Source: Podarcis bocagei (Eukaryota). Taken from it: a stretch of DNA of 64,000 nt. The notes under the pieces are model-generated. The model was not told the origin of the DNA. It saw only the letters and a list, made by a program, of their open reading frames with translations, and made no database searches. A program made the position numbers and the translations under genes. The stretch is taken from assembly GCA_964188305.1 (NCBI GenBank), contig OZ076886.1; one strand, given 5' to 3'. Positions 4,266 to 57,000 of this stretch are shown here, one piece after another (position 1 is the stretch's first letter; every line of letters begins with the position of its first letter).

Positions 4266-4406
4266 GGCCAAGTTACCCGCGCACAGGAGGCTGAAGAGAA
4301 CTACATCATCAAGCGAGAACTGGCAGTGGTTAAGCAACAGTGCAGTTCAGCAACCGAGAATTTGCAGAAGGCTCAAAGCACTATTCGGCAAATGCAGGAA
4401 CAGCAG
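4266..4406 (+). CDS. EVI5L: EVI5L exon GQVTRAQEAEENYIIKRELAVVKQQCSSATENLQKAQSTIRQMQEQQ
   Basis: ttttcag acceptor, gtgatg donor, 141 bp. Confidence 0.92.
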
Positions 4407-16754: not shown

Positions 16755-16997
16755 CCGTGTTTTTTGCTCTATAAGACTCACTTTTTCCCTCCTAAAAAGT
16801 AAGGGGAAATGTGTGTGCATCTGATGAAGCGAATGCAGGCTGCGCAGCTATCCCAGAAGCCAGAACAGCAAGAGGGATTGCTGCTTTCGCTTGTTGTTCT
16901 GGCTTCTGAGATTCAGAATATTTTTTTTCTTGTTTTCCTCCTCCAAAAACTAGGTGCGTCTTATGGTCTGGTGCGTCTTATAGAGCGAAAAATACGG
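16755..16997 (+). mobile_element. Tc1/mariner(pogo)-type MITE, copy 2
   Basis: Same sequence and TIRs as 4474-4732. Confidence 0.8.
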
Positions 16998-18584
16998 TGA
17001 CACAAGACTCCCAAGCCTCATGCAAAATCTCTGGCAACATCACGGAGGTTGGACTCCAACTCCTACCAACCCCAGTCCGTGTAACCGGTGCTGGAGGAGA
17101 TGGGAGTTGGAGTCCAGCAGGATCACATGTTCACCATCCCTGCCCAAAATACAGCATTTCCTTCCCCACAATAGCACAGTTTATGGGTGGAATTGATTGC
17201 ATGTTATTTCTGTATTTGCTGAAGAAAATATACCAAAAGCAACATTCACCTTTTCTCTCCACACTTATGATCACACACAAGATTTAGAGGCTGTTTACTC
17301 TGTCTCCAGCCAAATTCTCAAGTACATACTTTCCAGTTGTCTATCCTATTGAATCAGGCTTCTGTAGACAAAGCAGGGAACAAGTGGTGTTTAAAGGCAA
17401 TGGGGGCAGTTGACTGCCTATTGAAAGAGCCTCAGCAACTCTCCTGCACATCTGTTTAATAAAACTGGAGAAACTATCATTTGCAAGGTGGTTAACTAAA
17501 AAAAAAGACCCAAAAGGTTTCAGAATCTGAATCATTTTGTGGAGCAATCAGCTTTGTTTCCTTGTGAAGCTGGGCAATGGCATGAAAACGACCATTTATA
17601 TCCCAAAATAACATTCCTACAAAGAGAGTACAAGGTATTACTATAGTCAGATAGGAAGCCAAATGCAACGATGGTTCTCTTCTCCCAAAGTGCTGAAGCA
17701 GGCCTAAGAGCGATTGCAAGGCCACAATGGTAGCTAACAGCTTCCCCAAAGATGAGGGGCAGTAGTGCAAACATTCTGCGAAGATTTGAGCCTGAGTTTG
17801 CCTTTTAGTCCACACTTAGCAGTGCAGAAACGAAGAGCAAAACTCAATGAAGAAGCAGCACAGCTCTCTCCAGGCAGCTACCCAAAGCAATGAAAATCCC
17901 ATACAACTGCCAGAAAACACAATTGCTTATTTAAGCTAAAGCTTAAAGTCTGAGGTTTTCCAGTGTTGAAAGGTATTGATTCAGAATCGGTTGTGCTGCT
18001 GGACTGAAGCCATAAAGATGTTGTGGCCTGAAAGAGTTGCTGGTACAGGGGAATGCAAGCGGATTCACCGAAACAGGTGCTTGGTCACAGGAAAAACATC
18101 CTAGAACCTACAAGATAGATAAATCAGTGCGGATGACAGGCTAGACTTCCCCACCGGCCCTTCTTTGCCTGCCTCTCTTGCCAACCTATTACGGACCCAA
18201 GCTCCCCATTCCTCTCTCGTCTAGCAAACATTTTACATATTTGTTATTGTGCTACCACCACAGACTCATCAGCTAACAGTTGCAGTGTTTAAAGCTGCAG
18301 AGGCATGTTTTTATAACTGACCCTAAAAAATTTCCTTCCATTCGGTCTGGAGTATCTCATTTGTGAATGCTAATATGGGACGAACAACAAAAGGACCAGT
18401 TTCAAATACAAAATCCCTACTAGTTTTGACTTCCATCTCTCAGTTAGACATGGAATGCATCCCATGAACAATTCCATCTATTCAACTGGTGTATTGCTTC
18501 AAGTCCCAAAGTGAGTTGCAGAGACAACAAAGTACAATATGCAACAAAAGTCCATTAAAAGTTAAAATAAATGTGCTGAAAGCT

Positions 18585-19503
18585 CTATCTCTCTTTCAAA
18601 TCAGAGCCAGTGAAGGCAGTGAAGGTCCTGTGTGAATGTCTGGAGGCGGTTGGAGATTGGATGATGGCTAACAGATTGGGGTTGAATCCTGACAAGACAG
18701 AAGTACTGTTTTGGGGGGACAGGGGGCGGGCAGGTATGGAGGACTCCCTGGTGCTGAATGGGGTAACTGTGCCCCTGAAGGACCAGGTGTGCAGCCTGGG
18801 AGTCATTTTGGACTCACAGCTGTCCATGGAGGCGCAGTTCAATTCTGTGTCCAGGGTAGCTGTTTACCAGCTCCATCTGGTATGCAGGCTGAGACCCTTT
18901 CTACCTGCAGACTGTCTCACCAGAGTGGTGCATGCTCTAGTTATCTCCCGCTTGGACTAATGCAATGCGCTCTACATGGGGCTACCTTTGAAGGTGACCC
19001 AGAAACTACAACTAATCCAGAATGCGGTAGCTAGACTGGTGACTGGGGGCGGCCGCCAAGACCACATAACACCGGTCTTGAAAGACCTACATTGGCTCCC
19101 AGTAAGTTTCCGAGCACAATTCAAAGTGTTGGTGCTGACCTTTAAAGCCCTAAGCAGCCTTGGTCCAGTGGCTCCACCCCTGTCATTCTGCCCAGACACT
19201 GAGCTCCAGCGCCGAGGTCCTTCTGGCGGTTCCCTCACTGCAAGAAGCAAAGTTACAGGGAACCAGGTAAAGGGCCTTCTCGGTAATGGCTCCCACCCTG
19301 TGGAATACTGTCCCACCAGATGTCAAAGGAAAAAACAACTACCAGACTTTTAGGAGACATCTGAAGGCAGCCCTGTTTAGGGAAGCTTTTAATATCTGAA
19401 GGACTATTGTATTTTAATATTTTGATGGAAGCAGCCCAGAGTGGCTGGGGAAACCCAGCCGTTGGGCAGGGTATAAATAATAAATTATTGTATTATTATT
19501 ATC
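18585..19503 (+). mobile_element. 5'-truncated L2-clade LINE (C-terminal RT/ORF2 relic, 3' tail, (TAT)n end)
   Basis: WMMANRLGLNPDKTE, SLGVILDSQLS, HALVISRLD*, LQLIQNAVARLV..DHITPVLKDLHWLPV; in-frame stop and frameshift. Confidence 0.9.
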
Positions 19504-19663: not shown

Positions 19664-19779
19664 TTACCTTCTTCGGTAGAGGCTTCTTAGGGTAGAGCAC
19701 CACGTGCGACGTGCAGGGCCAGCTGCAGCTGGAGCTGACAAAGTGTCTTCACGCTTTGGAGCAGATGGTCCTACAGGGT
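19664..19779 (-). CDS. TGFBR3L: TGFBR3L putative last coding exon DPVGPSAPKREDTLSAPAAAGPARRTWCSTLRSLYRRR*
   Basis: Strong pyrimidine tract plus tag acceptor, in frame; TAA at 19664-19666 overlaps a possible AAG|GTAACT donor. Confidence 0.55.
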
Positions 19780-22700
19780 CTAGCAGGAGGAAGGAAGAAA
19801 ATGCAGCAGTGCTCCCCACCCGCCCCCAATTGCACTGCAACCATCCATCTCACCACCACACTAACCCCCTTCCAGAGGTAAACAAATGCACCCTCTTCCT
19901 ATTTGCATATGTTCGTTTCTCCAAGTCTTAGCATATTTATAATGTTCCACTTTTAAGTATTGAGATGAAGCAAAACTGCCCTAGCTTGGGTATATTTAAA
20001 ACTGGCTAATCCTGGAGGCAATGAACTGGCTCTCTTGCATACAGCAACCTGCTGTAGTAAGGACAGCTTTCTTGAATTCCTGGCTCTGCCCACTCCAAGT
20101 GCATTTGCATTATGGATGCTTCAAACGAGTCCAGGTATATGCAGAAGGTCCCAGGTTCAGTTCACCAGCATCTCCAGGTATAGCTGGAAGATAACTCTCC
20201 CTGCCTTATATTAGCTACAATAGGTGACTTTTTGGAAGCCTTATTCAGCAGAGGGAAGGGGACTTGCAGGCACCAGGAAGGTCTCAAGGTGCATATGTGC
20301 CTGGTTGCTGAACTGGACACCCATGCAATATGCATTCATTATTATTTAACAAATTTTGTATACTGCTTAGTTGTAGTCAAACATCTAAGGTGCTTATAAT
20401 GTTGAAATTATCAATTAAAGAACCAGTTTGAAATAATTAAACATTGAAAAATAATTAAAAGTTAATATAAGCGTGCACCACTGATTCCATTCACAGCCAG
20501 AGATGGAAATGAGTGCAGAATCAAAGCCTCTGCTCAAATGAAGGATTTCTCAAAAGCCAATGTGTCACCTTACCTGTCTCAGCTGCAGGCTGGCTCCTCC
20601 TCCCGGAAGCCGACTCACCTACGAGTTCAAGGCTGGCATTAAAATTTAGTAATTAAAGCTTTGTTCAGACCGCCTCATTTCAGAGAAAGGTGTGAAAATG
20701 CATGTGCACTGTCTAATAATAAAAAATAACCAGAAATAACAAGCAGACGGGGATCAATATCATGGCTGTGCACATAAATCCCTCTCCCTCCCCTCTGACC
20801 TTTACTTTCCTCCTTTGACTGTCTGGCCTTTTTATCATCCTATTTGTTCTGTTTCTATTTCTTTCTTTTTTCCATGGTGGATGGGTGGACAAGTACAACT
20901 GTGCAAAGGCAGACCAATATGAATAATGATGCAAATTTCCCAGACACATAATTCCCTCCAGACTTTTTTGTGACATTGATTCCAATATGTATTTCAGCTG
21001 TTGCATCTTCGATCGCCTAAGGGTCATGTTTCCCACTCTTATGATCCTTCCTAGAAGCCAACTGCAATGGGGATCATTTGGCTGCCAGCTTCCACCCCAA
21101 GATCCATGCCCATGAGATGGAGGCAGACAGTTGGCAGAAGCCAACCAGCCCCAACCTGGTGCCCTCCAGATGCTTGAGAGGACAACTCCAGGTCCAGGCC
21201 CAGCAAGCATGGCTGGCTAGTGATGAGAGCTAAAATCCAAAACAGCTGGAAGGCAATAGGTTGATGAAAGGTGTCATGATCTATAATTTGGAGTTTTCCC
21301 ATCTCGGACATGAGGCCCAGTCTACCTTTACAGAAATGCTAAGGTGTGCTCCCCCAGGCTTTGCCAAAAATCAATCATTCAAGTAAAATAGATGGTACCT
21401 ACAGCACTGAGGGGAGCCTCCTCATACCCACCTGTATAGGTGTAAATGAACCAGAGCCCAATAGTGAGGCAGATGCCGATGAGGAAGGCTGCAATAGCTA
21501 TCCCAATTACTGCGGGGACCGTCTGGCCTGGCGCAGCTGCAGCTATAGAGAAGCGGGAAATGGGGAGGATGCATGGAGAAAGAGCACGAAAATGCATTCT
21601 CATTCTCTGTCCAGGAAGGGGAGATGGGCCAGGGCCCGAAACGGGGTAATACGGAATGAAAAAGTCTGAGGATCAGAGTTCTTGCTCCAACCCACAGCAG
21701 CAGGAATCCTCAACTCCACTCCCCCCCCCCCCGAGCCAGGAGTAGAATCCCAGTCTAAAACCGATTTCAGTCCCCAAATCCCCGGGAAACAAGGCCAGCA
21801 AGAGATCATGGGGATGTTTGCTTACTTCGGACTACCTGAGTCTTCCGCTTGTGGGCTGCATCCTTTGGTGCTTTTCCTTGTTGTTTGTCTGGGACATTAG
21901 CTGCAGAAAAAGACACCAAAGTCAAGGAAGGAACAGATAATCTGAGGGAGTGTCTGAAGAAAATAGCCTCCGGGTGGCAAGGGGGAGAAAAGGAATGAGT
22001 GCATAACTCTGCCCATCATTGCTACTTTGCTTCACTCAGGATGAACATGTAAGATGTCATTGGCAAAGTCTGAGCTTGTAGCATGGTGAGATCCAAGGCA
22101 TCAATCTCCTGGGTAGGAGATGCTGGTGAACTACAAGCCCCATCATCCCTTGCCATTGGCCATGCTGGCTTGAGGTGATGGGAGCTGGAGTCCAAGAATA
22201 TCTAGAGGGCTACAGGTCCAGCACCTCTGCTCTGGAGAGATGCACTCCAAGACGCTTCCATCTCCCCAGCAAGCAGGACTCCCCCATCCGTTTCTTTCAG
22301 TTCCTCACTCACTCTGCAGGGCAGTTCTCTCCAGCATGGAGCCAGGGTGCTGAACTGCAAGGCCCTCAAGCCAACAACTCTCTTCTAGCTGCTATCTAGA
22401 ACCCACAGGAAAGTACCTGGTTTCGGGCCAGGAGAGGCAGCTCGGAGCGGAGTCTCCACAGTCACTAGCATAGGCTTTGTGATGGTGCGCTGGAAGCGGC
22501 TTGGGACCGCCTCCTCTTCTCCGCTGCAGGCCTCGTTCTCAGACCGACACTGAAACAAAAACCTGCCTCAGAAGAGTGCCTCATCCCAACAGTGGGAGGT
22601 AGGCCTTGGCCTAGTTACATCCCACCTGCGTCTCCATAAGCCCAGCCAGCTCATTTCTACAGCTAACAGGGAGGCTCTTTTGCACAGGCCCATTCCAGAG

Positions 22701-25700
22701 GGTTTCCACCCCTCCAAGGGGTTTCGCTTTCCTCTTGATTCCATCTTTTGGAATAAAGAGGCCTTCCACCCTCAGAGCAGAGATGGACCAAGGATTTCTG
22801 GAAGGGGCCAGTCATAGCTGAGGGGCAAAGCACACAGAGGGGCCCACATTCAACCCCCAGTCAAACATATCAAAGGAAAGACCTCTGCTTGAAACACTTG
22901 AGGGATACTGCCCTTCAGAGGAGGCAGTAATAATAAGCTAAGGGGTAACCAACATGGTGCCCCCCTAGATACCAATTGACTACAATTTTCATCACCCCTG
23001 GCCAATGGCCACACTAGCTGAGGTGCTGGGAATTATGAAGCCAGTGTCATCATCGAGCAGAGGGCACCATTTTGGCTACCTCTGGGCCAAGTGGAGAGCT
23101 TGCTGTGGCATATCAGTTTCCTCCCTAAGCATCCCCAATCAGGAGAGCCTATTCTGAAGCAGTAGTGCTATCAGGCCCTCAGACAGCTGCTAGAAGACAG
23201 GGTTCCCTAGCCCAGGGAGCCAGAGACCTTGGGGATTGCGCCCTTGGGTCTGGCGGAGTCCTGAGACCCCCTGCTGCAGAGGGTCAGACGGCAGTGCAAG
23301 AAGTGGATGGAGGCATTGGACCGGGGTTTCAACACAAAGCTCAGTCGCTGGCGTTCCTGGTACCCCAGAGGCAACGCCTGGGCCTGGCCTGGCAGCTTGG
23401 GTTTCCACAGCCTGACTTGGGCGGCAGCCACGGGACAGCCATGCTGGACCAGCAGATACACCGAGGTCTCTGAAGCATCTGAGGAGCTAGAGATGAAGCA
23501 CTTCTGGATGGTGAAGCTGAGAGACGAGTCATAGGTTGCCAAGGAAGCCTGGAGGAAAAAGGAAACACCATCTAGTCTGTAAACACAAGTGCAAGTTTTG
23601 CTGCCGACGTTTTCTGAATGCTGCATTGAAAAGCACATGAATCTGATCTTTGGAGAGTTTGTAAGTAAACCATTTTTAACTTGCCCCACACATGGTATTT
23701 TCTATGCTAAGAGAAGAGGGGAATTTTGGAAGGAACTTAGAAAGTTATATTCTAAGAATGACAACCTATATTTCCATGCTTTACTTTGTTATTTTAAATT
23801 TCTGCTGGGGTTCTCTCACCAAAGAATACTTGCCCCAGACTTGGTTCTTGGCATCCAGGAATTCTCTTTTTATACCTATTTTTTCATTGCAAACCAACCA
23901 TAAAGTTGGGCCTTGAATTGGGCCTCAGTATGAAATCTGCCTAGTCTATTCCTTGCTCTTTTGCTTACAGATGCATGTTTTGCTTCCCTGGGATGCATGT
24001 TGCCATTCTAAGCTGCTAAAACGTGGTGGCAAATCACCCCTGTTACTTCATCCCTTTGAGAGCTGCAGTGTAAGTTTATCACCCCCCATAAAGCAACAAG
24101 CAGGTCAACTGCCCTGTTTGAGGCTCTTAGAGAGACAGGGAGTGCTGCAAACCACCAGATCTCTGGACAGAGGAGGAATCACTTAGGGACAAGATTCTGG
24201 CGTGTAACTGCTGCATCCAAAGCCAGCTCTTGCATATTCCTCGTCCGCTTTACCTCCACAAAGACGAGGCTGTTGGCTGAGACAACAAAAGGTCCAAGTT
24301 GCTTGGCAAAAGCCTCTGTTTTGTAGAGCTCTAGGTTAAGGAGGGCATTGCCAAGGTGAAGGTAGGGATCCTGAAAGGCCGTTGCAGCTTCTGAGGGAGA
24401 TATCTGGGTTGGAGAAGGTGAAATACAGGAGACCTGCAGGAGAAAAACAGGTCTGTGGAGCGGTATTGATGTGCAATGACAAGAGAATACCCGCCCATCC
24501 ACATCCACATGAAATGGCACTGTAGGAAATAGATTCCCTCTGTCCATCCGGAGATGTCATCCTTGGCTACTCACTCCCTGAGTGTCCTGGTTTTCAAGAA
24601 TAGGCTTCTGGTCCCCAAGACACAAGATAGATTCTGTCCCCTCTGTTTTGGCTGTAGACGGTGGGTAGGTAACGGAACCATCCTCTCCCGCAAAGTCTTG
24701 CCTTGTCACCTCCCAGCCAGCTGTGTTGGCTTCTGCAAAGTGCTGTTGAGAGGCTGTGAAACTGGGAGGATGCAAAAATATGGGCCAAAAGAGTGTTGGC
24801 TCTTCTAGAGGAGGTGTGGCCCCTACAAAGGAAATACAGGTGTGTGGGTGTGATGCAATCATATGCCTTCTACGCTGCTGCTGTTAATCAGAATATGATC
24901 TATTCCAAGCATCACCAGTGTGGCCCCAAAGGAACACATGTGCCCAGCTCACAGAGGCCTTCTCTACAGTCTGCAGGGTACCCTCCCCTCCCAGCACTGA
25001 AATTAGGCTCAGAAGAAGCATTCTATTGGAGCCCATAGAATAGGTTGCAGGAGAGGAGGGCAGGGTACTCACAACAATTTCTCTGTTGCAGACTTGCCCA
25101 TGGGCCCAAGAATGTTGGCAACCCCATATCTGTTCCTTCTGTTACCCAAGTAAAAGGTCTGCACATTCTGACATAATATGGCATGCCTTCCTGTTCTCTT
25201 CCATGGGTTCAGCATTCAGAACAAAGGCAATGTGGCTTCATTTGCCCTTCTTGATTTTACCATTGTAGCCACAGCTGATTTCCTATTTGACACCATTTAT
25301 CATCCCTACGTGAATCCTGATTGGCTGGGATCACATAACGACTAGGAAATAAGCTCTCAAAAGGGTTTGGGAAAATGGCAGTGAAGCAGCAAAATATCTG
25401 TTAACAAATATATGCTGTTGGCCGGTGTGTATGTACCATTTCAGTCCCCTTGGAAGCATAATTTTCATGCTGAAAATGTTTTGATTTGGTGCATTCCTAA
25501 AATAAAACTGGAGGTTGTATAGCCTAGGGTAAAATGGTGCAGGAGGAACTGGAATATAAATGCCAGGAATCTGCAGCAGCGGTCACTAGTGGTTTGCCTC
25601 TAAGCTCTCTGGTGGGCACTTTTCCCATTCATGTCCATTGAAACTCTCCAAACCTACCATTCATCCCAACAAAAAGGAGAAACCTGTTCACCCGCTCAGC

Positions 25701-28700
25701 CTCAACGTAGGACGTAAAGGCAGGCAAATTCTGCTCCGTTGCAAACTGCAAAGGATCGAGGGTCGTCAGCCGAGGGGACGTCCGCTGGGTCACAGTCAGA
25801 GGCAGATCCATTTCTGTGCTGCTGACTGTGACTTTGTGCGAAGCCTAGAAAGGAATCCCAGCCTGAGTTACATATACAAGGCCCAGACATGGAGAGCAGC
25901 AGCAGGCACACCATAAACAAGAGACGGTCCAGGGGAATCAAATAGCAGCATGGAGACAGACTCCCAAGAGGGAGTAGCCTAGTGGGGTGGAGAGTTGGAG
26001 CCAGGAAGTAAGACACCTTGGCTCACTTCAGGAAAAATAATAAGGCTGGAGGAGGAGGAGGCAAGCCTAGAGTTATAGGGAGAATGCAGGGGAAGCTTAT
26101 GGAAGAGGGTTGGCAAAGCTCGCTAGTGGGCCTGTGAAGGCAGGACTTAGCAGAAGGAACCCTCCATAATATAACCCTTATAATAGTATTAAGTCCAGCA
26201 TCTAAAATTACCAAACTGCTTCCTCTAGGAAAGGTTGCAATTCTGCATAATGCATCTACAGTGGTACCTCAGGTTAAGAACTTAATTCGTTCTGGAGGTC
26301 TGTTCTTAACCTGAAACTGTTCTTAACCTGAGGTACCATTTTAGCTAATGGGGCCTCCCACTGCCGCCACGCCACCACCGCATGGTTTCTGTCCTCATCC
26401 TGAAGCAAAGTTCTTAACCTGAGGTACTATTTCTGGGTTAGCGGAGTCTGTAACCTGAAGCGTCTGTAACCTGAGGTACCACTGTATCTGGATTTGAGCA
26501 CATGTGTGCCCTGCTCCCTTCCAGATGTGTGCCACTGCCACCAACTTGGGGAGGGGGAGAGAGAGAAGCGCATTAGCTGAGAGCGTTACAGATCTATACC
26601 CTGCCCCTACCAGGACATGCAGCCGGCCAGTGAGGCGGTGGGTGTGAACCATCCACTCAGCAGCTCCCTCACTCTTCAGTATCAAGATCAGTCCCCAGTG
26701 GGGGGGCCTTCGGACAGCATGAAGTTCCACAGTCAAATGAGCCAGGGTGGGCCTAGAAGAGAGCAGGCTGTCCACCCACCACAACAGGATTAAGCACATG
26801 ATGGAAGACAGCGAAGCCCCACGCCACCCGTCCCCCAACTCAAGAGACCCCTGCCCAATATTCAAGGCCTAATACCAGCCACTGTCACTACTCGTTTTTG
26901 GCTCAAGGTCTCAGTGTCCGTCTGGCCTTGACTTTCGGGGGAAGTGCCATTGCTAAGTGGCAGGGCAACTGCACTGCATGCAGAAGGTCAGAGATTCGAT
27001 CCCCATCATCTCCAGACAGAGCTGAGAAAGACATGGGAGATCTGCTGCCAGTCCGTGTCAGCAGTACTAGGCTAGATGAACCAGCTTCCATGTTCCTGTT
27101 TATATCTTTAACACAAGGGTCACTTATCATACGCAGCTTCTTGCACAGGTTTCATTCTTCCTCACCATCCCCCTTCCCCATCTACACTAAGAACAAGTTC
27201 AACCTCCCTGTTCAAGACATGGCATCTCAATATGAACATTTCGCTACACCCCCCCCCCCCCCGGTTCAACAGCCGCATGCTGAAGCTCCGGCGACACCTG
27301 CCTGATACGCACCTTGGTGCAACTCCTTTGGAGAGGATGATGTGAACTTCAAGGACTTGCGGAGGGTCAGGATGCAGGCAAACTCTCAGAGGCTGGAGTT
27401 GGCACTTGGAGGCAAAGTGCACCGGGGTCAGGAAATTCCTACTTAATCTGCAAGCGGCTGGGGCAATCCTATCTGGAGAAGGAAAGGAATGAAGCATCTG
27501 GACTGAATGGTCACAGAAGAGCTGCTGCGATTTACTCTTTTTTGTTTGCAAGCAATGCAAACTCTTTGGCAACTGCTCTCCAGTTAATACTGGTGAGTCT
27601 TATTTATCTGTGCCGTGTATATATTCCATCTTCCCTCTATGATTGCAGTGCACAGATCTTTCCTTCCTGGATGGTCTCCCTGCCAAGCACTGAGCAGACC
27701 CAGACCTGCACAACTTCTGCAAAGTTACTGCATTAGCCCAGGACCCCAAAGACCAGCTGGCTGCCTTCCTCCTGCTTATCACACTGCAGTAGCGAATATG
27801 GGGAACATGTGTCTCTCCATACGTTGCTGGACTGCAACTCCAATCAGCCCCAGCCAGGGTGGCCAGTGGTCAGGGATGAGGGGAACTGCAGGACACACAG
27901 CCATAATGACACCCTTTCCCTCAGAGCCGATATCTACCCTCATCGCCCATGCCAGCCCCCAGGCGTGTGTAGATTCTGTTGACTCCACGGTATTCAGCCA
28001 GAGAGGTGACCCCTCCATGCTCCCTCCGTGCCCACTTCAGCAGGCGTTTTGGCGTCTTTGGTAAGATGGTCTCAGCAGAAGCCACTGGCCCTGCGGCTGA
28101 AACATTAGAGCCGGGGGAGACCTGTAGATAGGAGGAAGGCAAAGGTAAAATATACTAGCCTGGAGGACCTCCCCACTCTCTGACACCCCACCCTGGGGAG
28201 TGCACTAAGGTTGAACAGTGCTGCACTTTAGTCTGGGAGATCTGGGTTCAAGTTCCACCTCAGCCACAGCCTTAGGCAAGCCTCCCTCAGCCTCAATTAC
28301 CCCCATCTGTAAAATGGGAAGAATAGTAACTTACTACACAAGATGGTTCTGAAGACAAACAGAGGTAGAAAGTATTTTGTTAAAGTGCTATGAAGGTAGC
28401 AAATTAGCTTTTCCATCCACCCTTCCCATAGCTGCCGCTCATCTTCTATGCTTGCGTAGAGTAGGGGCTCCAATGACCCCCTCGGCAGGGCCTGGCTCAG
28501 TGATCCCCATGATGTTCTGCAGGCCCTTTGGCCCTCTATCCCATCTCACCTGGAAGGTCCAGTTTTTTCCAGGGGGAGACAGCAACACCCAACGCACAGG
28601 CTTCTGGGAATACAGCACAAAGATGGGGGCTCTGTCGAGGGGATCTGGGTCCAGAGTTATCAGAGTTACCTGAAAGAGGATCAAGGAGACATGCATGATC

Positions 28701-31700
28701 AAAGCAACTTACCCCTTGGATGTTCAGCAGGTGAGGTCTGTCCCCACCCCCAGCTCTAAGCAGGCCCTGCGCAGAGTGTTCCTCTTTGCTTCTCACAACT
28801 TGGCTAACCTAACCCTTCTGTGACTTAAGAGAGACTTCTTCCAGGCCCTGACAACTGTGAAGATGTGATTTAATAATAATAATAATAATAATAATTTATT
28901 ATTTATACCCCACCCATCTGGCTGAGTTTCCCCAGCCACTCTGGGCGGCTTCCAATCAAGTGTTAAAAACAATACAGCATTAAATATTAAAAACTTCCTA
29001 AACAGGGCTGCCTTCAGATGTCTTTGAAATAGAGTTTTGCCTTTTTGACTGACTGAGACACCTTGAACCGTAGTGCCAAGCTGAACTGCCATCTTGTTTG
29101 GGTATCCAATGGAGCTGTAGCGAGACCCAACATACAGCCTCATACATGGGAAGGTGGTTATGGGTGGGGATCTCCCATACCTGGCCATTTGCCGGCAATC
29201 CCTTCTTCAGGCTGATGACATGGACTTCTTGCCCCAGGGCAGAGCGGCCCCGGCTGGTGCATCCGTTGCCTTTTCGCAGTGATTCCCAGAAGCCAAGGAC
29301 GGGGTGTGGGGTAGAGGCAGACATGGGGAGGCAAGCGAGATGGTGCCAGGAGGCTGCAGGGGAAGGAGAAGAGCAATGCTGGAAGAAACGGGGCTTCAGA
29401 AAAGTAGTTTCCAAAACTGTGTACGTTTGGCATCCCCTTCTCCCCAAACACAAATTGCTCAGGTGCCTGAGCTCAAAATGATACACCAGCTTAATTTTTA
29501 TTTTTTTTTCATAATTCATTCTGTGTCTGAGAAACAAAAAATACGAATATCTGGCCAATGACTGAGGATGATGGAGGGAAAAATAAAACAACGAGGAAAC
29601 TCTGGGGGAACTGGTATGATGGGACAGAAATGGATCGGTGTGCATTTCATGGTTCCCACACTGAACGGGGAGGGTCACTGTGAATTGCTCTTAACGATGG
29701 CTTACTGGCTTATTTTTAGAGTGTACAAGGGAAAAAGGTGTTTCTTTTTCAGTCAGCTATCCATTCCCTCCACCAAGATACTATAAACTGTAAGGTGCTC
29801 AGTCTCCCCCTTCCTTTTTATATTCCTTTTCCAAAGGATACTCAGCATGTAGAGTCCTTGCTGGGTGGGAAAGTGGGATTTTTTTGGGGGGGGTATCCTC
29901 CCTTTTAGCTCCACCCCCCCCCCCCCCGTTTCTCCTGGGCATGTTTGATGGCACTTCTCTTGTTTTTTAGTGGTCATGTTTGGCACTCAACCCTCTGAGT
30001 TCACTATTAAAGGGAATTATTATTTAATGTCTGTTTTCATTATGAAGATGTAAGTATTGTCTTCTGCACTGACTGGCTGCAGCTCTCTAGGGACATTCTC
30101 AGTTCTACCTGAAGATGCTGGGACCTACTTCATGCAAAGCAGGTGCTCTAACCACTGACCATTCATTTTACGAATTAAATAATTACAGGGAAGCTGCTAG
30201 CCCTACACAGGGGCTACACATTACATACACAACAATATGCCAGCCATGTTGCCTCATGTTGTAATTAGGAGAGGCAGACTGGGTGAGAATGAGGTGGCAG
30301 ACCAGACTATATACTGTTCCGAGACTACAATCTAAAAAGTTCCTTGTAATAGGAAAGCTAACACAGTAGGGAGCAGGCTGGGCTGGTTTGTTGCCTTTCT
30401 ACGAAGGCAATTTTCAATTTAAAATACTGGAAGGAACAAAAGCTACCAAATATTCTCAGGGCTACCTCAGGAGCAGCCTGGCCTGGGCTCTCTCGTTTCT
30501 GCCTATGCTTCTGGGTAGAGTTATTAAGTTGCCCCAGGCAGCTAATTCTTTCTCCTCAATGTACTAGAATTTTACACACAGACAGCTTTAGGGGGAAGGG
30601 ATTTAAAAACACACACACCATCTGCAGCCTGAAATGGTACAATTCCATTTAGCACATGAGGATTCTACCAACTCAACCTGCCTTAACATTCCATGTGAAA
30701 GAATATGCACTGGCACCATGAGAAAGGAACAGAGAGCTGTAAAGGTAAAGGGACCCCTGACCATTAGGTCCAGTCATGACCGACTCTGGGGTTGTGGCGC
30801 TCATCTCGCTTTATTGGCCGAGGGAGCCAGCATACAGCTTCCGGGTCATGTGGCCAGCATGATTAAGCCGCTTCTGGCGAACCAGAGCAGCGCACGGAAA
30901 CGCTGTTTACCTTCCCGCCGGAGCGGTACCTATTTATCTACTTGCACTTTGACATGCTTTCGAACTGCTAGGTTGGCAAGAACTGGGACTGAGCAACGGG
31001 AGCTCACCCTGTTGTGGGGATTCAAACTGCCGACCTTCTGATCCGCAAGTCCTAGGCTCTGTGGTTTAACCCACAGCGCCACCCGCATCCCACAGAGAGC
31101 TGTACCAGGTACCAAAGTACAGCTGCAGGAGTGTTCAACATGGGTGTTTTCCCCCCAATTTGGGAATGTGAAGAAATAGCAGAAGTACCTTACAGCAAGT
31201 GCAGAGTGCCTTCCCCTCACCATTCAGAACAGAAACTATGACTCCTGGTCAACTTTGGAAGCCTGGACTCTTCTCTTCATAGGAAGCAACCATGGTCGGC
31301 TGGCTATGAGTTCAGCAGATAGCTTAAGAGCCTCCGTGCTATAAACAACCCACAGGCAGCATCTACCTTCCCTATGGTAATCAATGTCAAAAACAAATAC
31401 TGAGTGCCGAGCTGCAGATTAAAAGTGCCCTTAGCTGTGTGTACTTGCTTATCAAGGAACTGAAAATGCATCCTGTGAAAAATAAGCAGGTACAGAATGA
31501 AGGATACTCTGTAAATCCAAGCTGTTTACTGAAGGTACATCCAATAAAGAGAAGCAGGACAAAAGGCATCAGAAGCATCATGCAGAATTGGGAAACCCCA
31601 TGTAAGGTAAAGGTAAAGGACCCATGAACGGTAAAATCCAGTCGAATTTGACTTTGGGGTGCAGTGCTCATCTCTGCTTTCAGGCCGAGGGAGCTGGTGT

Positions 31701-32442
31701 TTGTCCACAGACAGCTTTTCCGTGTCATGTGACCAGCATGACTAAACCGCTTCTGGCACAATGGAACACTGTGAAAGAAACCAGAGTGCACGGAAACGCC
31801 GTTTACCTTCCCGCTGCACTGGTACCTATTTAACTACTTGTACTGGCATGCTTTCGAACTGCTAGGTTGACAGGAGCCGGAACAGAGCAATGGGAGCTCA
31901 CCCCATTGTGTGAATTTGAACTGCCAATCTTGCGATCGGCAAGCTCAAGAGGCTCAGTGGTTTAGACCACAGCACCACCCACGTCCCTCAAACCCCTAGT
32001 ATAAAACCCCATTGAATACATTTACGGTATACTCTGACAACTTCATCTACCTATTCTGCTGCATGGGAAGAAAATTTGACAAGCCCAAATGGCTCTGTGT
32101 GAGTGCACACATGTGCCATTTAGCAAAGTTGAAAGACCTGCTCTACATTCAAGCTTGCAAATAAAAATGTATTTGAAGACTGTTAATTTATTTTTTATAT
32201 GTATACTTCAGGATACATGCAGCAATGTATCCTGGACAGCTCCCTGACAATAGTGTTTTGTTTTTGGTTTTTTAGCAAAACGTTTTACACCTTTGGTGTG
32301 GATAATTATTGTGCAGCCCATTTAAATGTTTACAATAGCCACTCTGTTAGACTTTACCTGTCCCAGAGCACTCCCAAACGACAAGCAGCAGCAGGAGGTA
32401 TTGTCTCCATAGGTGATCGATATGCTGGCAGTTTCTATGCAT
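19664..32442 (-). CDS. TGFBR3L: TGF-beta receptor type 3-like (betaglycan paralog), about 754 aa: signal peptide, orphan domain, vestigial ZP-N, ZP-C, TM helix, cytoplasmic tail. Coding exons: 32358-32442, 29181-29353, 28550-28669, 27953(or 27938)-28121, 27313-27472, 26611-26752, 25658-25844, 24575-24822, 24254-24433, 23228-23548, 22417-22549, 21826-21900, 21432-21542, 20574-20618, 19664-19779
   Basis: Exon phases chain into one open frame (2265 bp including the stop). Betaglycan-like motifs: GCTSRG..QEVHVI, LLKWARREHGGVTS, LILILK, FTSYVEAERVNRF, GNALLNLELY, FTIQKCFIS, LSFVLKP..FLHCRLTLC, TITKP, VIGIAIAAFLIGICLTIGLWFIYTYTG. Directly downstream of and co-oriented with MAP2K7, as human TGFBR3L is. 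Confidence 0.88.
20574..20618 (-). CDS. TGFBR3L: TGFBR3L cytoplasmic exon GESASGRRSQPAAET
   Basis: tag acceptor, CAG|gtaagg donor, 45 bp phase 1-1; resembles betaglycan GETAGRQQVPTSPPASE. Confidence 0.7.
21432..21542 (-). CDS. TGFBR3L: TGFBR3L transmembrane exon ..TVPAVIGIAIAAFLIGICLTIGLWFIYTYT
   Basis: ctatag/gtgggt; matches the betaglycan/endoglin TM [26 protein letters not shown]. Confidence 0.92.
21826..21900 (-). CDS. TGFBR3L: TGFBR3L juxtamembrane exon ANVPDKQQGKAPKDAAHKRKTQVVR
   Basis: ttttctgcag acceptor, gtaagc donor, 75 bp, phase 1-1. Confidence 0.72.
22417..22549 (-). CDS. TGFBR3L: TGFBR3L exon CRSENEACSGEEEAVPSRFQRTITKPMLVTVETPLRAASPGPKP (end of ZP-C and external hydrophobic patch)
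   Basis: tttcag/gtactt; matches CVPPDEAC..KTFTKPLAVI. Confidence 0.88.
23228..23548 (-). CDS. TGFBR3L: TGFBR3L ZP-C exon ASLATYDSSLSFTIQKCFIS..LSFVLKPRSNASIHFLHCRLTLC..IPK
   Basis: ctccag acceptor, weak AAG|gtctct donor at the homologous position; ZP-C cysteine pattern. Confidence 0.88.
24254..24433 (-). CDS. TGFBR3L: TGFBR3L ZP exon VSCISPSPTQ..GNALLNLELYKTEAFAKQLGPFVVSANSLVFVE
   Basis: ctgcag/gtaaag, 180 bp; matches FNC..GNITFNMELY..FSVPENGHVYVE. Confidence 0.9.
24575..24822 (-). CDS. TGFBR3L: TGFBR3L linker exon ending in the first ZP-N strand (..TESILCLGDQKPILENQDTQG)
   Basis: tttgtag acceptor, gtgagt donor, phase 1 to 0, stop-free. Confidence 0.78.
25658..25844 (-). CDS. TGFBR3L: TGFBR3L orphan-domain exon ASHKVTVSSTEMDLPLTVTQRTSPRLTTLDPLQFATEQNLPAFTSYVEAERVNRFLLFVGMN
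   Basis: ttctag/gtaggt; matches ITSYTMAPVANRFHL. Confidence 0.88.
26259..26484. mobile_element. Tigger/pogo-like MITE with TA TSD
   Basis: ta|cagtggtacctcaggtta ... taacctgaggtaccactg|ta. Confidence 0.9.
26611..26752 (-). CDS. TGFBR3L: TGFBR3L orphan-domain exon PTLAHLTVELHAVRRPPHWGLILILKSEGAAEWMVHTHRLTGRLHVL
   Basis: ttctag/gtaggg; LILILK..W motif of betaglycan/endoglin. Confidence 0.88.
27313..27472 (-). CDS. TGFBR3L: TGFBR3L orphan-domain exon DRIAPAACRLSRNFLTPVHFASKCQLQPLRVCLHPDPPQVLEVHIILSKGVAPR
   Basis: ctccag/gtgcgt; matches PPKCNIGKNFLS..GC..EVHII. Confidence 0.88.
27953..28121 (-). CDS. TGFBR3L: TGFBR3L orphan-domain exon VSPGSNVSAAGPVASAETILPKTPKRLLKWARREHGGVTSLAEYRGVNRIYTRLGA
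   Basis: ctacag acceptor; matches LLNWARKEYGAVTSFTE..RNIYIKVGE. Donor is either GC after 27953 or GT after 27938. Confidence 0.85.
28550..28669 (-). CDS. TGFBR3L: TGFBR3L orphan-domain exon VTLITLDPDPLDRAPIFVLYSQKPVRWVLLSPPGKNWTFQ
   Basis: tttcag/gtgaga, 120 bp; matches betaglycan VTL..VFLLNSPHPLVW. Confidence 0.88.
28870..29022 (-). mobile_element. L2-type LINE 3' tail with (TAA)n on +
   Basis: Reverse complement of the 19355-19503 tail. Confidence 0.85.
29181..29353 (-). CDS. TGFBR3L: TGFBR3L orphan-domain exon ASWHHLACLPMSASTPHPVLGFWESLRKGNGCTSRGRSALGQEVHVISLKKGLPANGQ
   Basis: Matches betaglycan HPVQALMES..GCASRG..QEVHVLNL; cag/gtatgg splice sites. Confidence 0.9.
30742..31091 (+). mobile_element. 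Sauria SINE with a 13-bp TSD (acagagagctgta)
   Basis: aaggtaaagggacccctg.. head, ..ggtttaacccacagcgccacc tail; TSD at 30729-30741 and 31092-31104. Confidence 0.88.
31604..31987 (+). mobile_element. Sauria SINE, second and more diverged copy
   Basis: (aaggta)n head; homologous along its length to 30742-31091. Confidence 0.85.
32358..32442 (-). CDS. TGFBR3L: TGFBR3L signal-peptide exon MHRNCQHIDHLWRQYLLLLLVVWECSGT(A)
   Basis: accATG Kozak-like start, hydrophobic core, G|gtaaag phase-1 donor; acceptor ttccttcctag opens the exon at 32489 (5'UTR part). Confidence 0.8.
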
Positions 32443-51026: not shown

Positions 51027-54000
51027 CTGCAAAGGAACAGGCAAAAAGAGATGGAAAATAAGCAAGGAAGTCACACCACCTGTGTTATTTCTACAGAGCT
51101 GCGAGCAACGGTTGTCAGCTATAGCTAAGCAACAAGGAGGATACACAACAGCAGCAAACACAAGCAGGGAAAAATCTGACCAAGTCAAATAAAAAAGTAA
51201 AAGAACTTTCCCTCTCTTTTAAAGAAACTATGTGGAGAAAAGAAAGGATGTCACTTTATTAATCTCAGCTTCCATGCCAGTTGGCACAAACTATTTCCAA
51301 GAAATGTTACTGGTTATTTCTAAACTTTAAGGGTTGGCAGAAGCACCCACTGTGGCCTTTTTCCAAGTCCTGGGGGATTTTTTAAAAATATTCACAATGA
51401 AAGAGGTGTGACCAATACTCACAAGTAGCTTGTTGTACTTTGGTCTCTTCCTGTGATCTTTAGTAAGGCTAGAAATAACAGAAACACACATTCAAAACAC
51501 AGGATCAAATTTGTTTTATGGAGCAACCAACACGGCATGTTTCCACTACATGATACATAATGAATCCTTGCAAACAGAGCTCATATTGACATAGGTCTAC
51601 TCTAAGTTTCAAACTCTCTCAGCTAAAAAGGATGAAGTCCATTATCCTTCCATACCAATAATCTTTCAGGGTCAACTTCCTATGCCCAGTATCCCACGGC
51701 AGTTTGCAACAATCTTACGTGAGGTTGTTTGATGGAATCCAGGAGTGGCAAGTTGGACACATAAGCTCAAAGTTAACTGGAACAAAACAATCACTATCAG
51801 AAGTAGATTTTCTGTTTGACCATTTGTGGAATTGTCAATGCCAGTTGCAAGGAGTGCAATTCATTTACAGCTGCAGATACAGCTGCCTAATTGTTGGAGT
51901 GAATGGAAACAAGGAAAGATGGGGAAATGTAACTAACTTACGACATGTTACTTTTTATTTCCATGGCAATGAAGGACTTCCTACACCTTTAGAATCGGTA
52001 CATCAGACACAGAAAAGAGATAAGAGCCTGGAATGTGTAGACAAGAAGAGGTCATACACAAAGATGTGCTAGCCCAGAATTTAAGCACAGCTGTCATGGA
52101 GGCAGATATGGGATTTCCTTTCTAGGTGGAAATCACCAGCACAGGTTGAGTTCAGTCTTTAGAAGAGCATGGTACCAGTTGGAACAAGCAGAACAGTTCC
52201 AATTCTTTTGCATACACTATTAATGGTCTTGAAGATAGGGTGCCCTAGAATGAACATTAGCCAATATCTGAGAAAGCAACTGGTGTGCAAGAGTTCAGCA
52301 GGAAACCAGCTGGAACTGCAGGGCTTCCTGTCTATGTAAGAAATGCTGAAGCAGCCGCTCTACATAACATGAATTTAAGGCACATCACTCACCAGTCTTT
52401 CACAAAGGACTGGAAATCCACAGAAAATCCCATGTTGTTTGGGAGAAGGGGAGGATCTTCCTGCAACACCTTGGTGAGGACTTCAAAATCTGTTTTACAG
52501 TTCTTGTAGGGGAACTGACCTGTAGCCAGCTCAACCTGCATTAGGGGTGGTAGAGAAATGAAGAATAAGTGCTTAAAAATGGGAATAATCTAAAAAGCAG
52601 TATTATCATCAGCATCTCTTCAATGATGCTTCAGTGATGTATATTTGCATATAAGCCGCAGGGCAGTTTACAACAAAAGCAAATAGATAAAAATCCATAC
52701 AAACAACACAATTCTAAATGACTGTACAGAAAGAGACGAGAGCAAGAAAGGGAAGAAATGTGGAACAGAATGATCACTTGGCTTATCCAGCCTCAACAGC
52801 AGCAACAAAAATGGGGTTCAGGATAGCCAGAATTCAGGCCTCCTTTGAATCAGTTAACTCCATTAAAAAAAATTGAAGAAAAGAGAAGAAAAACTCACCC
52901 CAAAGCTTATTGCTGTTTATGTCATGTATTAAGGACTGCATACATTAAAGGATTGAGATATGATCCAGAACCTGAAGAGCCCAACAAGGGTACACAAATT
53001 CCCTTAAAAATGGGGAGCAGGTTTTACTTACCAGAGAGATGCCGAGGCTCCAAACATCTGCACGTATATCATAATCTGGTTTTGAGGGATCAGGGGGATC
53101 TATTCTCTCAGGCTGGAAACAAAAAGATTATTACAAATTCAGTCAAAAATAAAACCTCTTTGCTACTGGTCTCTTACCTGTACCTAGCAAGATCCCTCTA
53201 ATTAAAGAAGCCAAACCATGGGTGAAATTGAATGTAGAACGAAGTGGTGTGTGGGTGTGGGTGTGTACACAGAATGAACGCCACTCTCACAACAAGCCTT
53301 CCCCCATCCTCCTAAACCTGTTCTGGGGGTTCCTTCAACCTTCCAAAGCAGATTTAGGGGGAAGCACATGGGTACATGGGGAGAGGAGGGAGAGTCTCAC
53401 TGCATGAGTGGGCCTTGTTCCGTGCACACAAAAACTTAGCTGAATCCCACTGGATGTTGCTAAGACAAAATGCAGGCTGTTTTGATACCGTAACAGCATC
53501 TGCGTAATAGCTGCCATACAGTTTCCCAAAAGCTCAGGCCAAATCTAGTGACAACTTTCTGTAGTAAAATGCAAGTGATGGAATTCTTAGTCCTGGAGAG
53601 AAGTTATCGAGACACATGGTGCATTTCAACGGCTGCAACGAAGCAGGTCTGGCCTACAGCACTGCTAGGATGAGAGACTGCTAGGGATCATACCCAACCC
53701 ATGCAAAGCAGCTTGGAGGAAGTATGACATAGAAGTTTAACAAATAAAGAGTATTTAATTAAATCATACACAAGCTATTCTGAGCAATTTGTAGGAAGAG
53801 CAACATACAATGTCACTTTTCTTTTTTTTTTACTCGGTTCCATCCCAGCACAGCAAGATTCCTGCTGCTGTTCTCTCGCCATCTGCCCATCTCTTACCGC
53901 CATATATGCTGCGCAACCAGCACTCCGGGTTTTGGCTTTCGAGTCCACCAGCCTCCCACTGATCCCGAAGTCACACAATTTGATTTGCCCCCTCTCATCC

Positions 54001-57000
54001 AACAAGATATTTGAAGGCTTCACATCTCTATGGATGACACCATGCTTCTCTTTCAGATAGTAGAGTGCTTTGACAATCTGAAAGCAACACAATGCAGAAG
54101 AATAAACCGTTGCTCCCTATAAGGAAAACAACTCAGAACTAGTCTAGAACTCATGATACCCTTTTATCAACGTGCCTGGAAAAACATGTGCTGCTTAGAG
54201 AACAAAGGTTATGCACTCAGCAATCAGTCTGAGGCTTTCGTGATACTTGGAAGAGATAGTTTCAGCTATCTGGGGCAAAACGTCTTGTATACACAACAAC
54301 TTGTGGGGAGACAGCGTTACAGCACAGCCCTTCAGTCATGCAGATTACCAAGCAGTTTTCAGGGATACCACTGGGGAAAAAGAAAGGTGGCATGTTCATG
54401 AACTGTTGTTACTATTGAAATGCTGTTACTATTCTTGGGATCCGAAGGTGAGATCTTGGGCTTCATAGTTTTCAGTGGGGTGTTATAATACTTGACTCTT
54501 CAACCGAGCCCTAGATTTTACCACATCTCATTATGCAGCATCAAGGGGGGGGGGGGGGCAGATGGCCAAAAGGAAATGAAAACAACCACACAGAACAGAG
54601 CGCCCAGTCCTGGGTTCCAAATTTTGCCAAAATCCACCCAACAGTGTAGTCATTATTTAAAAAATCTTACTCCCTCTGCTGTCCATAACAGCATTTTGCT
54701 CCAAGCAGGGAAGCTTAGCTCATTTCTGTGAGCCAAAAGAGAAACAGACGTGTGAGGCTCAAGTAAATGGAGGAGAATGGTATGTAAAATAACAAATAAC
54801 AAGTGGAGAATGGTTGTTGTCCCTTCAAAAACAGCAGAAAACGCAGCTGAAAAAGAAAAATACCTGGATGCCATATGCAGGAAGGAGTTTGAAGCACAAC
54901 GCATCTCCTTAAAAGCCATGATCATGGAAACTTGGAAGCAATTAATGGCTCCTCTGTGTCACAGACAAAACAAGCCAGATTCTAGCTTGCCATGTTGTGT
55001 GGACCTGGACTCATGGCTTGTTTCCTCCAAACAAACCTCAAGTGGTAACCCAAGAATAAACCTTTGTTACCACTCATCAGTTTGGAGGAAACAAGCCATG
55101 AGCCCAAGTCCAGGCAACATGACAGGCCAGATATATGGCTTGTTTTATCTGTGAAGCTGCCACAGCTGAAGCAAGGAAGGAGTACTATTAAGTAGTCTAT
55201 ACCAGCATGCTATTCGTTCTATGCTTAGCATGACATGTGAACTGGGCCAATGTCTAGATGGGGGAAATGTGGGATCTAAATGAAAAAAGCAAAAGCAAAA
55301 ACAACCCTCACCGCCACAGTCATCTTTCCCAAGATCCTCTCAGGGATTGGCCCTTGGATTCGTTTTTTCAGCTTCTCTGCACATGTGCCCATTAGCTCCA
55401 TGGCTATAAAAACATCAGTCTAAAGGATGGGGGGGGGGGGAATAAAATAAAAAAGTAAAAGTTAAGGTTATTATGATGTGGCTGTTCTAAATACATTGAA
55501 AAATACAGATGGACTTGAGAAAACAGTAGCATCGCCTTCATTTACATTTGTGATGAAAGTTCCAAAGCACTGAACAATGTAAGGACAGTCATGACTCTTC
55601 AGCACCACATCCAGGTCCATCAGAATCCTCTTGTTCTCCTCTTTGTTACCAGAACGACGCATTTGCTGAACAGAGAAGAGAATGGGGATTAGGAGCAGAA
55701 GTGGAAAGAGCCAAAAGAGTCGCGGGTGATCATGCTTTGACCCACAAAGGGCCTCATGGCCCTTAACTGCTTTATGATTAATTCACAGAGCGTCACTACT
55801 TTCCATCAAAGTAAGTTAAGGCCCACTTAATCCTGCCCAACTGGATTCTCTCTCAACAGCTGACACAGGAACCAAATAATCTGTGGCACCTAAGAGTTTC
55901 ACCAGCAATGAACCCTCTAGAAGTCCAACTCTGCCATTTCCTTTCATCTTAAGGTATCTTCCACTCAACACCCAGTAGATCTACCTCACCTTCACAGCTA
56001 TGATGTGTCCAGTCTTCTTGAAACGCATTTTCCACACCTGTCCACACGTCCCACTTCCAATCTCACCCAGATTTTCTAGGTCATTGATTTCTGCTTGGTA
56101 TCTCTGTGAGAAGATGAGCACATAGAGAAGCTACTCATCAATCCATTTTATATTGAAAAGAGTGGGGAGTTGCTTTCGGTTAATTCTTAATATACATCAG
56201 GCTTCAATATATTTTGAACTGCTGCACCTCTCAAGCCAGCTCACCTGCCCTCCGATGGTCAAGTAACCCGTTTGCTTCATGATTTCCTGCAGTTTCTGAT
56301 CAATCTCTATACTAGAAAGGGAAAGAGAAAAAAGGAAAAATATTGTGTTTGCTTCCATTTAGCCATGGCATACGAAAATCTCAGAACCCTTCTCTCTGCA
56401 GAAACAGGCTCCATCTCTGTGGAGAACCACACATTCCTCTTCTCAACACGGGCATCTAGACAACCCTATGAACTAGTAGATCTCCATCATGAAAGAATTT
56501 CTAATATGAATTCAAAGCCAGCAACTCACAAGTCACTTACATAACAAGACACCTCAATCCGCAGATCAGAGAAGTGCAGGTTAAATCATGAGTTTTTATT
56601 ACCTGTTGAAACCCAAAAAAGCAGCAGGTCCTCTACTAACTCCCAGGGCCATTACTGTATATTTTTGTGTGAATGCTATAAATCACTCATTTAGCAGACA
56701 AGCTTAGCCCGTTAATTCACAAACAGGACAGTTTAAACTTTGCATGGGCTGCTACTGATATTACATGATATTACAAAAAAATAATGCAACTCAAGGCAAC
56801 TAGGGGTTATGAAAGTTCCGTATCTACCTAAAAAAGATGGTTTGAGACAGGAGCCCTTTTCAAAAGCTCTGCCTCTTACATCAAAAGAACAGTGTGAAGC
56901 AGCTGTTAAGACTGTGGCAATAGCAATAAGCAACAAGATTAAAGTGCCTAGAGAACATTCAGTTCCCCAACACGCTATTATCCACGGCTGTACAGGCACA

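Follow-up and report, generated by a model that had tools for sequence, protein, structure and literature searches.

A predicted complete betaglycan-type orphan domain in the TGFBR3L gene of a lacertid lizard

Results

The TGFBR3L locus of Podarcis bocagei

A 64,000-nucleotide stretch of the genome of the lizard Podarcis bocagei (contig OZ076886.1, assembly GCA_964188305.1; hereafter the window) carries on its minus strand a gene of 15 coding exons, with a 764-residue open reading frame (ORF), AG acceptors and GT donors throughout, and phases that agree from exon to exon. We show here that this gene is very probably the lacertid orthologue of TGFBR3L, and that it retains an ancestral build resembling that of betaglycan (TGFBR3). 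To our knowledge, TGFBR3L has been described only in mammals, where it is a minimal inhibin B co-receptor that consists of the C-terminal part of the zona pellucida region (ZP-C) only and that controls follicle-stimulating hormone (FSH) and litter size.

The gene model was guided by the closest database proteins, those of Podarcis muralis (P0100) and Zootoca (P0107), using tblastn. The product is 96.7% identical to the RefSeq proteins of P. muralis and P. raffonei, 96.3% to that of P. lilfordi and 90.8% to that of Zootoca, and its exon usage is identical to that of the predicted P. muralis and P. raffonei proteins. The coding exons are as follows; “contig junctions” refers to the transcript-like contigs described below.

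32358..32442, minus strand: exon 1, with ATG at 32442, classical signal peptide MHRNCQHIDHLWRQYLLLLLVVWECSG, GT donor, phase 1
29181..29353, minus strand: exon 2, start of the orphan domain, with C36, C60 and the motif HPVLGFWE...GC.SRG...EVHV
28550..28669, minus strand: exon 3, orphan domain; junctions 28669/29181 and 28121/28550 in contigs
27938..28121, minus strand: exon 4, orphan domain, helix region LLKWARREHGGVTSLAEY; contig junctions
27313..27472, minus strand: exon 5, orphan domain, with C195, C219, C211 and a second motif, EVHII; contig junctions
26611..26767, minus strand: exon 6, orphan domain, first codons SLLSS; contigs use the acceptor at 26767
25658..25844, minus strand: exon 7, end of the orphan domain; junctions to exons 6 and 8 in contigs
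24575..24822, minus strand: exon 8, linker, in which the N-terminal part of the ZP region (ZP-N) is not detectable; contig junctions
24254..24433, minus strand: exon 9, vestige of the ZP-N end, followed by the beginning of the ZP-C module; contig junctions
23228..23548, minus strand: exon 10, ZP-C core; Pfam PF00100 E 2.9e-9, betaglycan ZP-C 4ajv E 4.9e-14
22417..22549, minus strand: exon 11, end of ZP-C and membrane-adjacent stalk (CSGEEE); protein-guided model
21826..21900, minus strand: exon 12, stalk; protein-guided model
21432..21542, minus strand: exon 13, transmembrane helix VPAVIGIAIAAFLIGICLTIGLWFIY; protein-guided model
20574..20618, minus strand: exon 14, cytoplasmic tail; protein-guided model
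19664..19779, minus strand: exon 15 (coding part), cytoplasmic tail and TAA stop (19664); protein-guided model

The segment of central interest, 25658-29353, extends from the last base of exon 7 to the first base of coding exon 2; likeness to the N-terminal half of betaglycan is already visible in stop-free minus-strand stretches between 25.6 and 29.4 kb, and the translation of exons 2-7 is free of stops and yields the 328 residues (positions 29-356) of the orphan domain. Downstream of the orphan exons, positions 24822 to 19664 hold the exons for the linker, ZP-C, transmembrane helix and tail. At the other end of the gene, exon 1 is backed by tblastn with the Podarcis and Zootoca proteins, and its methionine is the start of the RefSeq isoforms P0259 and P0260; the alternative 5′ exons of RefSeq map to about 32.6 and 33.7 kb, and the first coding exon lies at 32.4 kb. 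A hydrophobic signal at the N terminus, a hydrophobic helix of 26 residues encoded by exon 13 and a tail of 53 amino acids predict a single-pass type I membrane protein. The stalk encoded by exon 11 (22417-22549) contains a Ser-Gly followed by an acidic run (CSGEEE), which resembles a glycosaminoglycan attachment site; betaglycan carries its glycosaminoglycan chains elsewhere, in ZP-N.

Sequence and predicted fold of the orphan domain

Single exons of this gene match betaglycan orphan chains in the PDB (7lbg, 6mzn, 9fdy; E 1e-4 to 2e-3). Once spliced, the 328 residues align from positions ~4-14 to 320-325 with positions ~25-357 of betaglycan, as judged by phmmer comparisons with 14 vertebrates and amphioxus (E 1e-26 to 1e-38). 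Four cysteines (C36, C60, C195 and C219) are invariant in a MAFFT alignment that holds 15-17 long, orphan-bearing TGFBR3L sequences (TGFBR3L-long), 14 betaglycans, 3 endoglins and 2 amphioxus sequences; the fifth cysteine of betaglycan is replaced by Ser273 in the lizard protein. An additional cysteine, Cys211 (27412-27414, exon 5), occurs in only 4 of 17 TGFBR3L sequences, those of lacertids and the amphisbaenian Rhineura; if unpaired, it could permit intermolecular disulfides.

The structure was modelled on the Podarcis domain P0100:73-400, which is 99% identical to the orphan domain described here, with an alignment of 49 sequences. The AlphaFold2 model has a mean predicted local distance difference test score (pLDDT) of 86.3 and a predicted template modelling score (pTM) of 0.80, and its pLDDT falls below 50 only at model residues 211-220. 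A Foldseek search of the PDB returned as significant matches only betaglycan and endoglin chains: the orphan domains of rat and zebrafish betaglycan (9fdy, 9fk5, 6mzn and 6mzp) at full length, with E of 8e-25 to 1e-20 over ~335-347 aligned columns; that of human endoglin (5hzw, 5i04), with E of 1e-14; and the shorter human betaglycan chain 7lbg, with E of 8.5e-11. The next match had an E of 0.05. Pfam scans of the single exons and of full-length proteins found no orphan-domain family, and true betaglycan was equally blank, so that the library used evidently does not contain PF26060 and the blank carries no weight. The lizard orphan domain is predicted, on the strength of the model, to be complete and two-lobed, with the fold of betaglycan and endoglin.

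The initial annotation of this locus, made from the DNA letters, had placed six frame-consistent orphan exons between the signal peptide and the ZP region, and our model reproduces them to the exact base; it had also described a betaglycan-type orphan domain with conserved cysteines, which the end-to-end alignment, the four invariant cysteines and the AlphaFold2 fold bear out. The fold modelling that it proposed as a check gave the confident model above, matching only betaglycan and endoglin orphan structures. Its orphan-plus-ZP architecture stands, and its protein length of ~754 residues becomes 764 in the refined model.

The TGF-β contact residues of betaglycan in reptile TGFBR3L

Wieteska et al. 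(PMC11865472) reported that the orphan domain of zebrafish betaglycan holds transforming growth factor-β (TGF-β) by the loop PNSSSAFQ (244-251), by L208, L210 and L213, and by F49; the substitutions F49A, L210A, L213A, F250A and D253A each abolish TGF-β binding (D253A may also perturb folding), as does scrambling of the loop. We transferred this numbering to TGFBR3L with an offset of 27, set from the PDB alignments. F49, L210, L213, F250 and D253 occur without exception in 14 of 14 betaglycans. Reptile TGFBR3L carries L or I at position 49 (Q in a single squamate), P or S at position 210 (L in two species), F at position 213 and H at position 253 (Q in one sequence, R in one), and nothing aligns with F250; in place of the binding loop there is a stretch that varies in length, includes an optional SLLSS and is the only low-confidence part of the model. 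The contact residues are absent from amphioxus as well and therefore look like innovations of betaglycan.

These substitutions bear on a further reading of the gene, in which the orphan domain works as does that of betaglycan and presents TGF-β1-3 to TGFBR2, so that reptile TGFBR3L is a redundant second betaglycan. We consider this reading unlikely: although the fold and the cysteine framework are the same, L208 is retained and positions 49 and 213 are still hydrophobic, any one of the five mutations is sufficient to abolish TGF-β binding in betaglycan, and reptiles have P or S at 210, H at 253 and no alignable F250 in a loop that varies in length. With four of the five contact residues replaced and the fifth falling in a loop that has been remodelled, the reptile TGFBR3L orphan domain is unlikely to bind TGF-β in the manner of betaglycan, as far as can be read from the sequences; and because the TGF-β-binding residues are not kept, the analogy with betaglycan gives no ligand for the reptile domain.

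Exon 6 has a choice of two in-frame AG acceptors at its start (26753-26767), separated by 15 nt. Of these, the contigs use the upstream one, which adds the residues SLLSS; these residues are absent from several other squamates and from all turtles, and they sit in the loop equivalent to the binding loop of betaglycan.

Splicing of the orphan exons to the ZP-C exons

Four public runs were aligned to positions 23400-29399. Contigs of three of these runs, from three studies, contain eight intron-skipping joints, from exon 2-exon 3 through exon 9-exon 10: 23548/24254, 24433/24575, 24822/25658, 25844/26611, 26767/27313, 27472/27938, 28121/28550 and 28669/29181. All of them coincide with the predicted exon ends, and each is CT..AC on the plus strand, that is, GT..AG on the strand of the gene. 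The exon 2-exon 3 junction is found in contigs of three runs and in 2 raw reads of run X23. Moreover, single contigs span many exons: one of 1627 nt covers exons 10-9-8-7-6-5, and another runs from exon 7 to exon 2 plus 131 nt past exon 2. Given that eight exact junctions occur in contigs of three studies, the orphan exons are not a chance occurrence, and intron-less contigs in three independent studies are hard to explain except as complementary DNA. The possibility, raised with the initial annotation, that the orphan exons are not spliced to the ZP-C exons is contradicted by the contig that joins exons 5-10; the junction check that it proposed succeeds for exons 2-10, in transcript-like contigs, and the exon 1-exon 2 junction lies outside the coverage.

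Differential expression of TGFBR3L has been reported in embryonic gonads of Pogona (PMC8049264), a hint of non-pituitary use. Two intronic segments, at 26257-26487 (intron 6) and ~28860-29030 (intron 2), show RNA-contig depths of 1e4-1e5 with many loose ends in all four runs; a search of these two segments found neither an Rfam match nor an internal repeat, and both are presumably repeats of a dispersed kind that occur in many transcripts.

Selective constraint on the orphan exons

Codon alignments were made exon by exon with the orthologous loci of Zootoca, Rhineura, Elgaria and Tiliqua, and the ratio of nonsynonymous to synonymous rates (dN/dS) was calculated by the NG86 method with codon bootstraps.

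dN/dS against Zootoca: orphan 0.42 (95% 0.22-0.79), ZP-C 0.95
dN/dS against Rhineura: orphan 0.28 (95% 0.20-0.40), ZP-C 0.42
dN/dS against Elgaria: orphan 0.29 (95% 0.20-0.40), ZP-C 0.36
dN/dS against Tiliqua: orphan 0.22 (95% 0.16-0.27), ZP-C 0.29

In none of the four comparisons did a bootstrap replicate of the orphan dN/dS reach 1, and the orphan value never exceeded the ZP-C value of the same comparison. At the protein level, identity to Rhineura is 79-86% for the orphan exons and 68% for the ZP-C exon 10. On both measures, no other part of the gene is as well conserved in squamates as the orphan domain. Purifying selection acts on the orphan exons at least as strongly as on ZP-C, and the neutral evolution that the initial annotation had named as a ground for abandoning its reading is not what we observe.

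These data, together with those on splicing, make highly improbable any reading in which the functional protein is short, as in mammals, whether the orphan exons are taken for decaying remains or for part of a separate or read-through transcript that gene predictors fused with a short ZP-C gene. Predictors do merge neighbours at this locus, as the turtle RefSeq fusions described below show; RefSeq also lists Podarcis isoforms (663-664 aa) without the first orphan exons, and ZP-N has decayed in squamates. However, contigs join exons 5-10 in one molecule and exons 2-7 in another, none of the 15-17 TGFBR3L-long sequences has an interrupted reading frame or lacks any of the four cysteines, the intervals around dN/dS values of 0.22-0.42 exclude 1, and the fold is predicted with confidence.

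Orthology and gene neighbourhood

Homologues were collected by phmmer with the ZP-C exon and by database name look-ups. Proteins named “TGFBR3-like” fall into three size classes: 690-870 aa in squamates, turtles, lungfish and (partial) coelacanth; 474-501 aa in caecilian and newt; and 269-343 aa in marsupials and placentals. In a maximum-likelihood tree of ZP-C (44 sequences, rooted on amphioxus), the lizard gene lies in a TGFBR3L clade (support 95/90) that takes in mammalian, amphibian, lungfish and coelacanth members and stands apart from the 14 betaglycans. This tree contrasts betaglycan with TGFBR3L only: endoglin ZP-C is too divergent to be detected with the lizard ZP-C as query, and endoglin is present only in the orphan tree. 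In the latter, also rooted on amphioxus, betaglycan, endoglin and TGFBR3L-long (85/98) form three separate groups. Because the orphan and ZP-C trees agree, the orphan domain was inherited vertically within the TGFBR3L lineage, and was not borrowed from betaglycan. The identification of the gene as TGFBR3L in the initial annotation therefore holds, its grouping with TGFBR3 being refuted by the ZP-C tree, in which endoglin has no part.

In the ZP-C tree, amphibian and mammalian TGFBR3L group together (93/79) to the exclusion of sauropsids, contrary to the species tree; this grouping may come from long-branch attraction, or from convergent change after loss of the orphan domain. A protein of Acipenser sinensis (P0067, 867 aa; flagged UNVERIFIED_CONTAM) has an orphan domain, ZP-N and ZP-C, and both trees place it at the base of the TGFBR3L clade; judged by this sturgeon protein, the long form may predate the split of ray-finned and lobe-finned fishes.

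TGFBR3L (32.4-19.7 kb) has as its upstream neighbour, on the same strand, MAP2K7:

53895..54080, minus strand: MAP2K7 kinase-domain exon; PDB phmmer human MAP2K7 E 8.8e-35 vs MAP2K4 7e-23

This is also the arrangement in the human genome, where the gene order is MAP2K7-TGFBR3L. A Pfam search had no match for four other ORFs in the window: three downstream of the gene (4092-4451, 9554-10075 and 16910-17284) and one at 36764-37474, in the interval between the gene and MAP2K7. On the plus strand, reverse-transcriptase-like open frames at 18580-19350, a retrotransposon fragment, lie just past the last coding exon. RefSeq fuses MAP2K7 and TGFBR3L in Mauremys and Chelonia, where the proteins P0276, P0278, P0280, P0281 and P0117 are named “MAP2K7 isoform X...”; these turtle proteins are merged or read-through models of two adjacent genes.

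That the gene is betaglycan itself or a recent reptile duplicate of it, which would make its orphan domain unremarkable, is extremely improbable: entries of Varanus, Anolis carolinensis and Pogona do bear the name “transforming growth factor beta receptor type 3”, the architecture is betaglycan-like and the best sequence matches in the PDB are betaglycans, but both trees separate the gene from the betaglycans, Podarcis has a separate TGFBR3 of 844 aa (P0158), identity to betaglycan orphan domains is only 27-32%, and the gene lies directly downstream of MAP2K7, as human TGFBR3L does.

Comparison with betaglycan, endoglin and mammalian TGFBR3L

The lizard protein shares with betaglycan the order of signal peptide, two-lobed orphan domain, ZP region, transmembrane helix and short tail, the four orphan cysteines, the orphan fold, and a homologous ZP-C. 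It differs from betaglycan as a distinct paralogue that falls into separate clades in both trees: the fifth cysteine, the TGF-β contact residues and the binding loop are absent, the cytoplasmic tail is different, ZP-N is not detectable in squamates, and the orphan domain evolves ~3.5 times faster. With endoglin (ENG/CD105) the orphan fold and the four cysteines are held in common, but the endoglin orphan branch, at ~3 substitutions per site, is far more divergent. The orphan domain of endoglin is its sole ligand-binding site, for bone morphogenetic proteins 9 and 10 (BMP9/10).

Mammalian TGFBR3L has an orthologous ZP-C, transmembrane helix and tail, and is adjacent to MAP2K7. Unlike the lizard protein, it measures only 269-343 aa and contains ZP-C only, its mature chain beginning at about the start of lizard exon 9; the lizard protein has in addition the 328-residue orphan domain and a linker of ~110 aa. 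The fox and marsupial proteins (269-318 aa), with ZP-C only, agree with the short mammalian form, essentially a ZP-C ectodomain, of which the initial annotation had spoken, and its proposal of a third lineage of orphan-domain co-receptors is right as regards architecture. Brûlé et al. 2021 (PMC8673766) identified mammalian TGFBR3L as an inhibin B co-receptor and described it with a single extracellular ZP domain, without cross-species comparison.

The same gene appears in RefSeq and UniProt as “transforming growth factor beta receptor type 3-like” of squamates and turtles. These versions were predicted automatically, and many of them carry spurious extra sequence at the N terminus or are fused to MAP2K7; predictions of 690-870 aa exist for dozens of squamates and turtles, and also for lungfish, with PF26060 (the TGFBR3/endoglin N-terminal family) and PF00100 already assigned. 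The sequence and architecture of long TGFBR3L are therefore not new to databases, and the advance made here consists in their verification and interpretation. Full-text literature searches found no paper on a long or orphan-bearing non-mammalian TGFBR3L.

Loss of modules across lineages

Measured against the bipartite ZP module of ZP-N and ZP-C, the lizard protein has ZP-C only: a Pfam scan found no ZP-N (PF23344) in the Podarcis protein between the orphan domain and ZP-C (24254-24822), whereas PF23344 matches the turtle, lungfish, coelacanth, caecilian and newt orthologues. Amphibian TGFBR3L (caecilian and newt; P0028, P0043 and P0133, predicted proteins only) has ZP-N and ZP-C and no orphan domain, whereas the marsupial (P0029) and fox (P0060) proteins have ZP-C only. 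If the amphibian models are complete, these distributions suggest that the orphan domain was lost twice independently. In a search with a turtle protein, filtered by length and by words, a long form from birds or crocodilians did not turn up.

Discussion

Our analysis identifies the gene at 32.4-19.7 kb as, very probably, a TGFBR3L orthologue with a predicted build of signal peptide, complete orphan domain (aa 29-356), linker minus the ZP-N core, ZP-C, one transmembrane helix and short tail. Lizard TGFBR3L would then be a membrane co-receptor for ligands of the TGF-β family, in which ZP-C, by orthology with the mammalian protein, would serve inhibin, and the orphan domain would add a second module for binding or avidity. 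The specificity of this module probably differs from that of the TGF-β site of betaglycan, given the substitution of four of the five contacts and the remodelling of the loop that holds the fifth. The short mammalian protein would be a derived truncation, and the amphibian predictions suggest a second, independent loss.

Several points weigh against this interpretation. Each functional step proposed for the reptile protein is one that we infer. The runs that gave the contigs are presumed, not established, to be RNA; the contigs differ from the genomic sequence at a few sites per exon, and may come from another individual or a close relative. The one confirmed raw-read RNA run, X23, is nearly blank on the exons, with just 2 reads at a single junction, a sign that expression may be low or restricted to certain tissues; the junction evidence spans exons 2-10 and stops short of exon 1; and the support from synteny comes from the upstream side only. 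Moreover, a dN/dS of 0.2-0.4 is moderate, the orphan domain evolves ~3.5 times faster than that of betaglycan (Podarcis-Terrapene path lengths in the orphan tree), and the loss of ZP-N and the variable, low-confidence loop at aa 239-248 reveal relaxed constraint in parts of the ectodomain.

A broader scenario can be offered only tentatively. TGFBR3L may have begun as a full third paralogue of betaglycan and endoglin, from which modules were shed independently: the orphan domain and ZP-N in mammals, the orphan domain only in amphibians (per the predictions), and the ZP-N core only in lepidosaurs. The sauropsid orphan domain might then be an independent ligand site with a specificity for neither TGF-β nor BMP9/10, and inhibin/activin-FSH feedback or gonadal TGF-β-family signalling in reptiles might use a co-receptor function that mammals lack.

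If TGFBR3L was ancestrally a full receptor whose reptile form is kept under selection, the mammalian protein would be a truncated remnant, and not a purpose-built small receptor, and vertebrates would have three orphan-domain lineages, not two. Added to the losses of ZP-N and of the orphan domain in particular lineages, this would make TGFBR3L a natural domain-deletion series from which the roles of the individual modules in inhibin and TGF-β co-receptors may be read.

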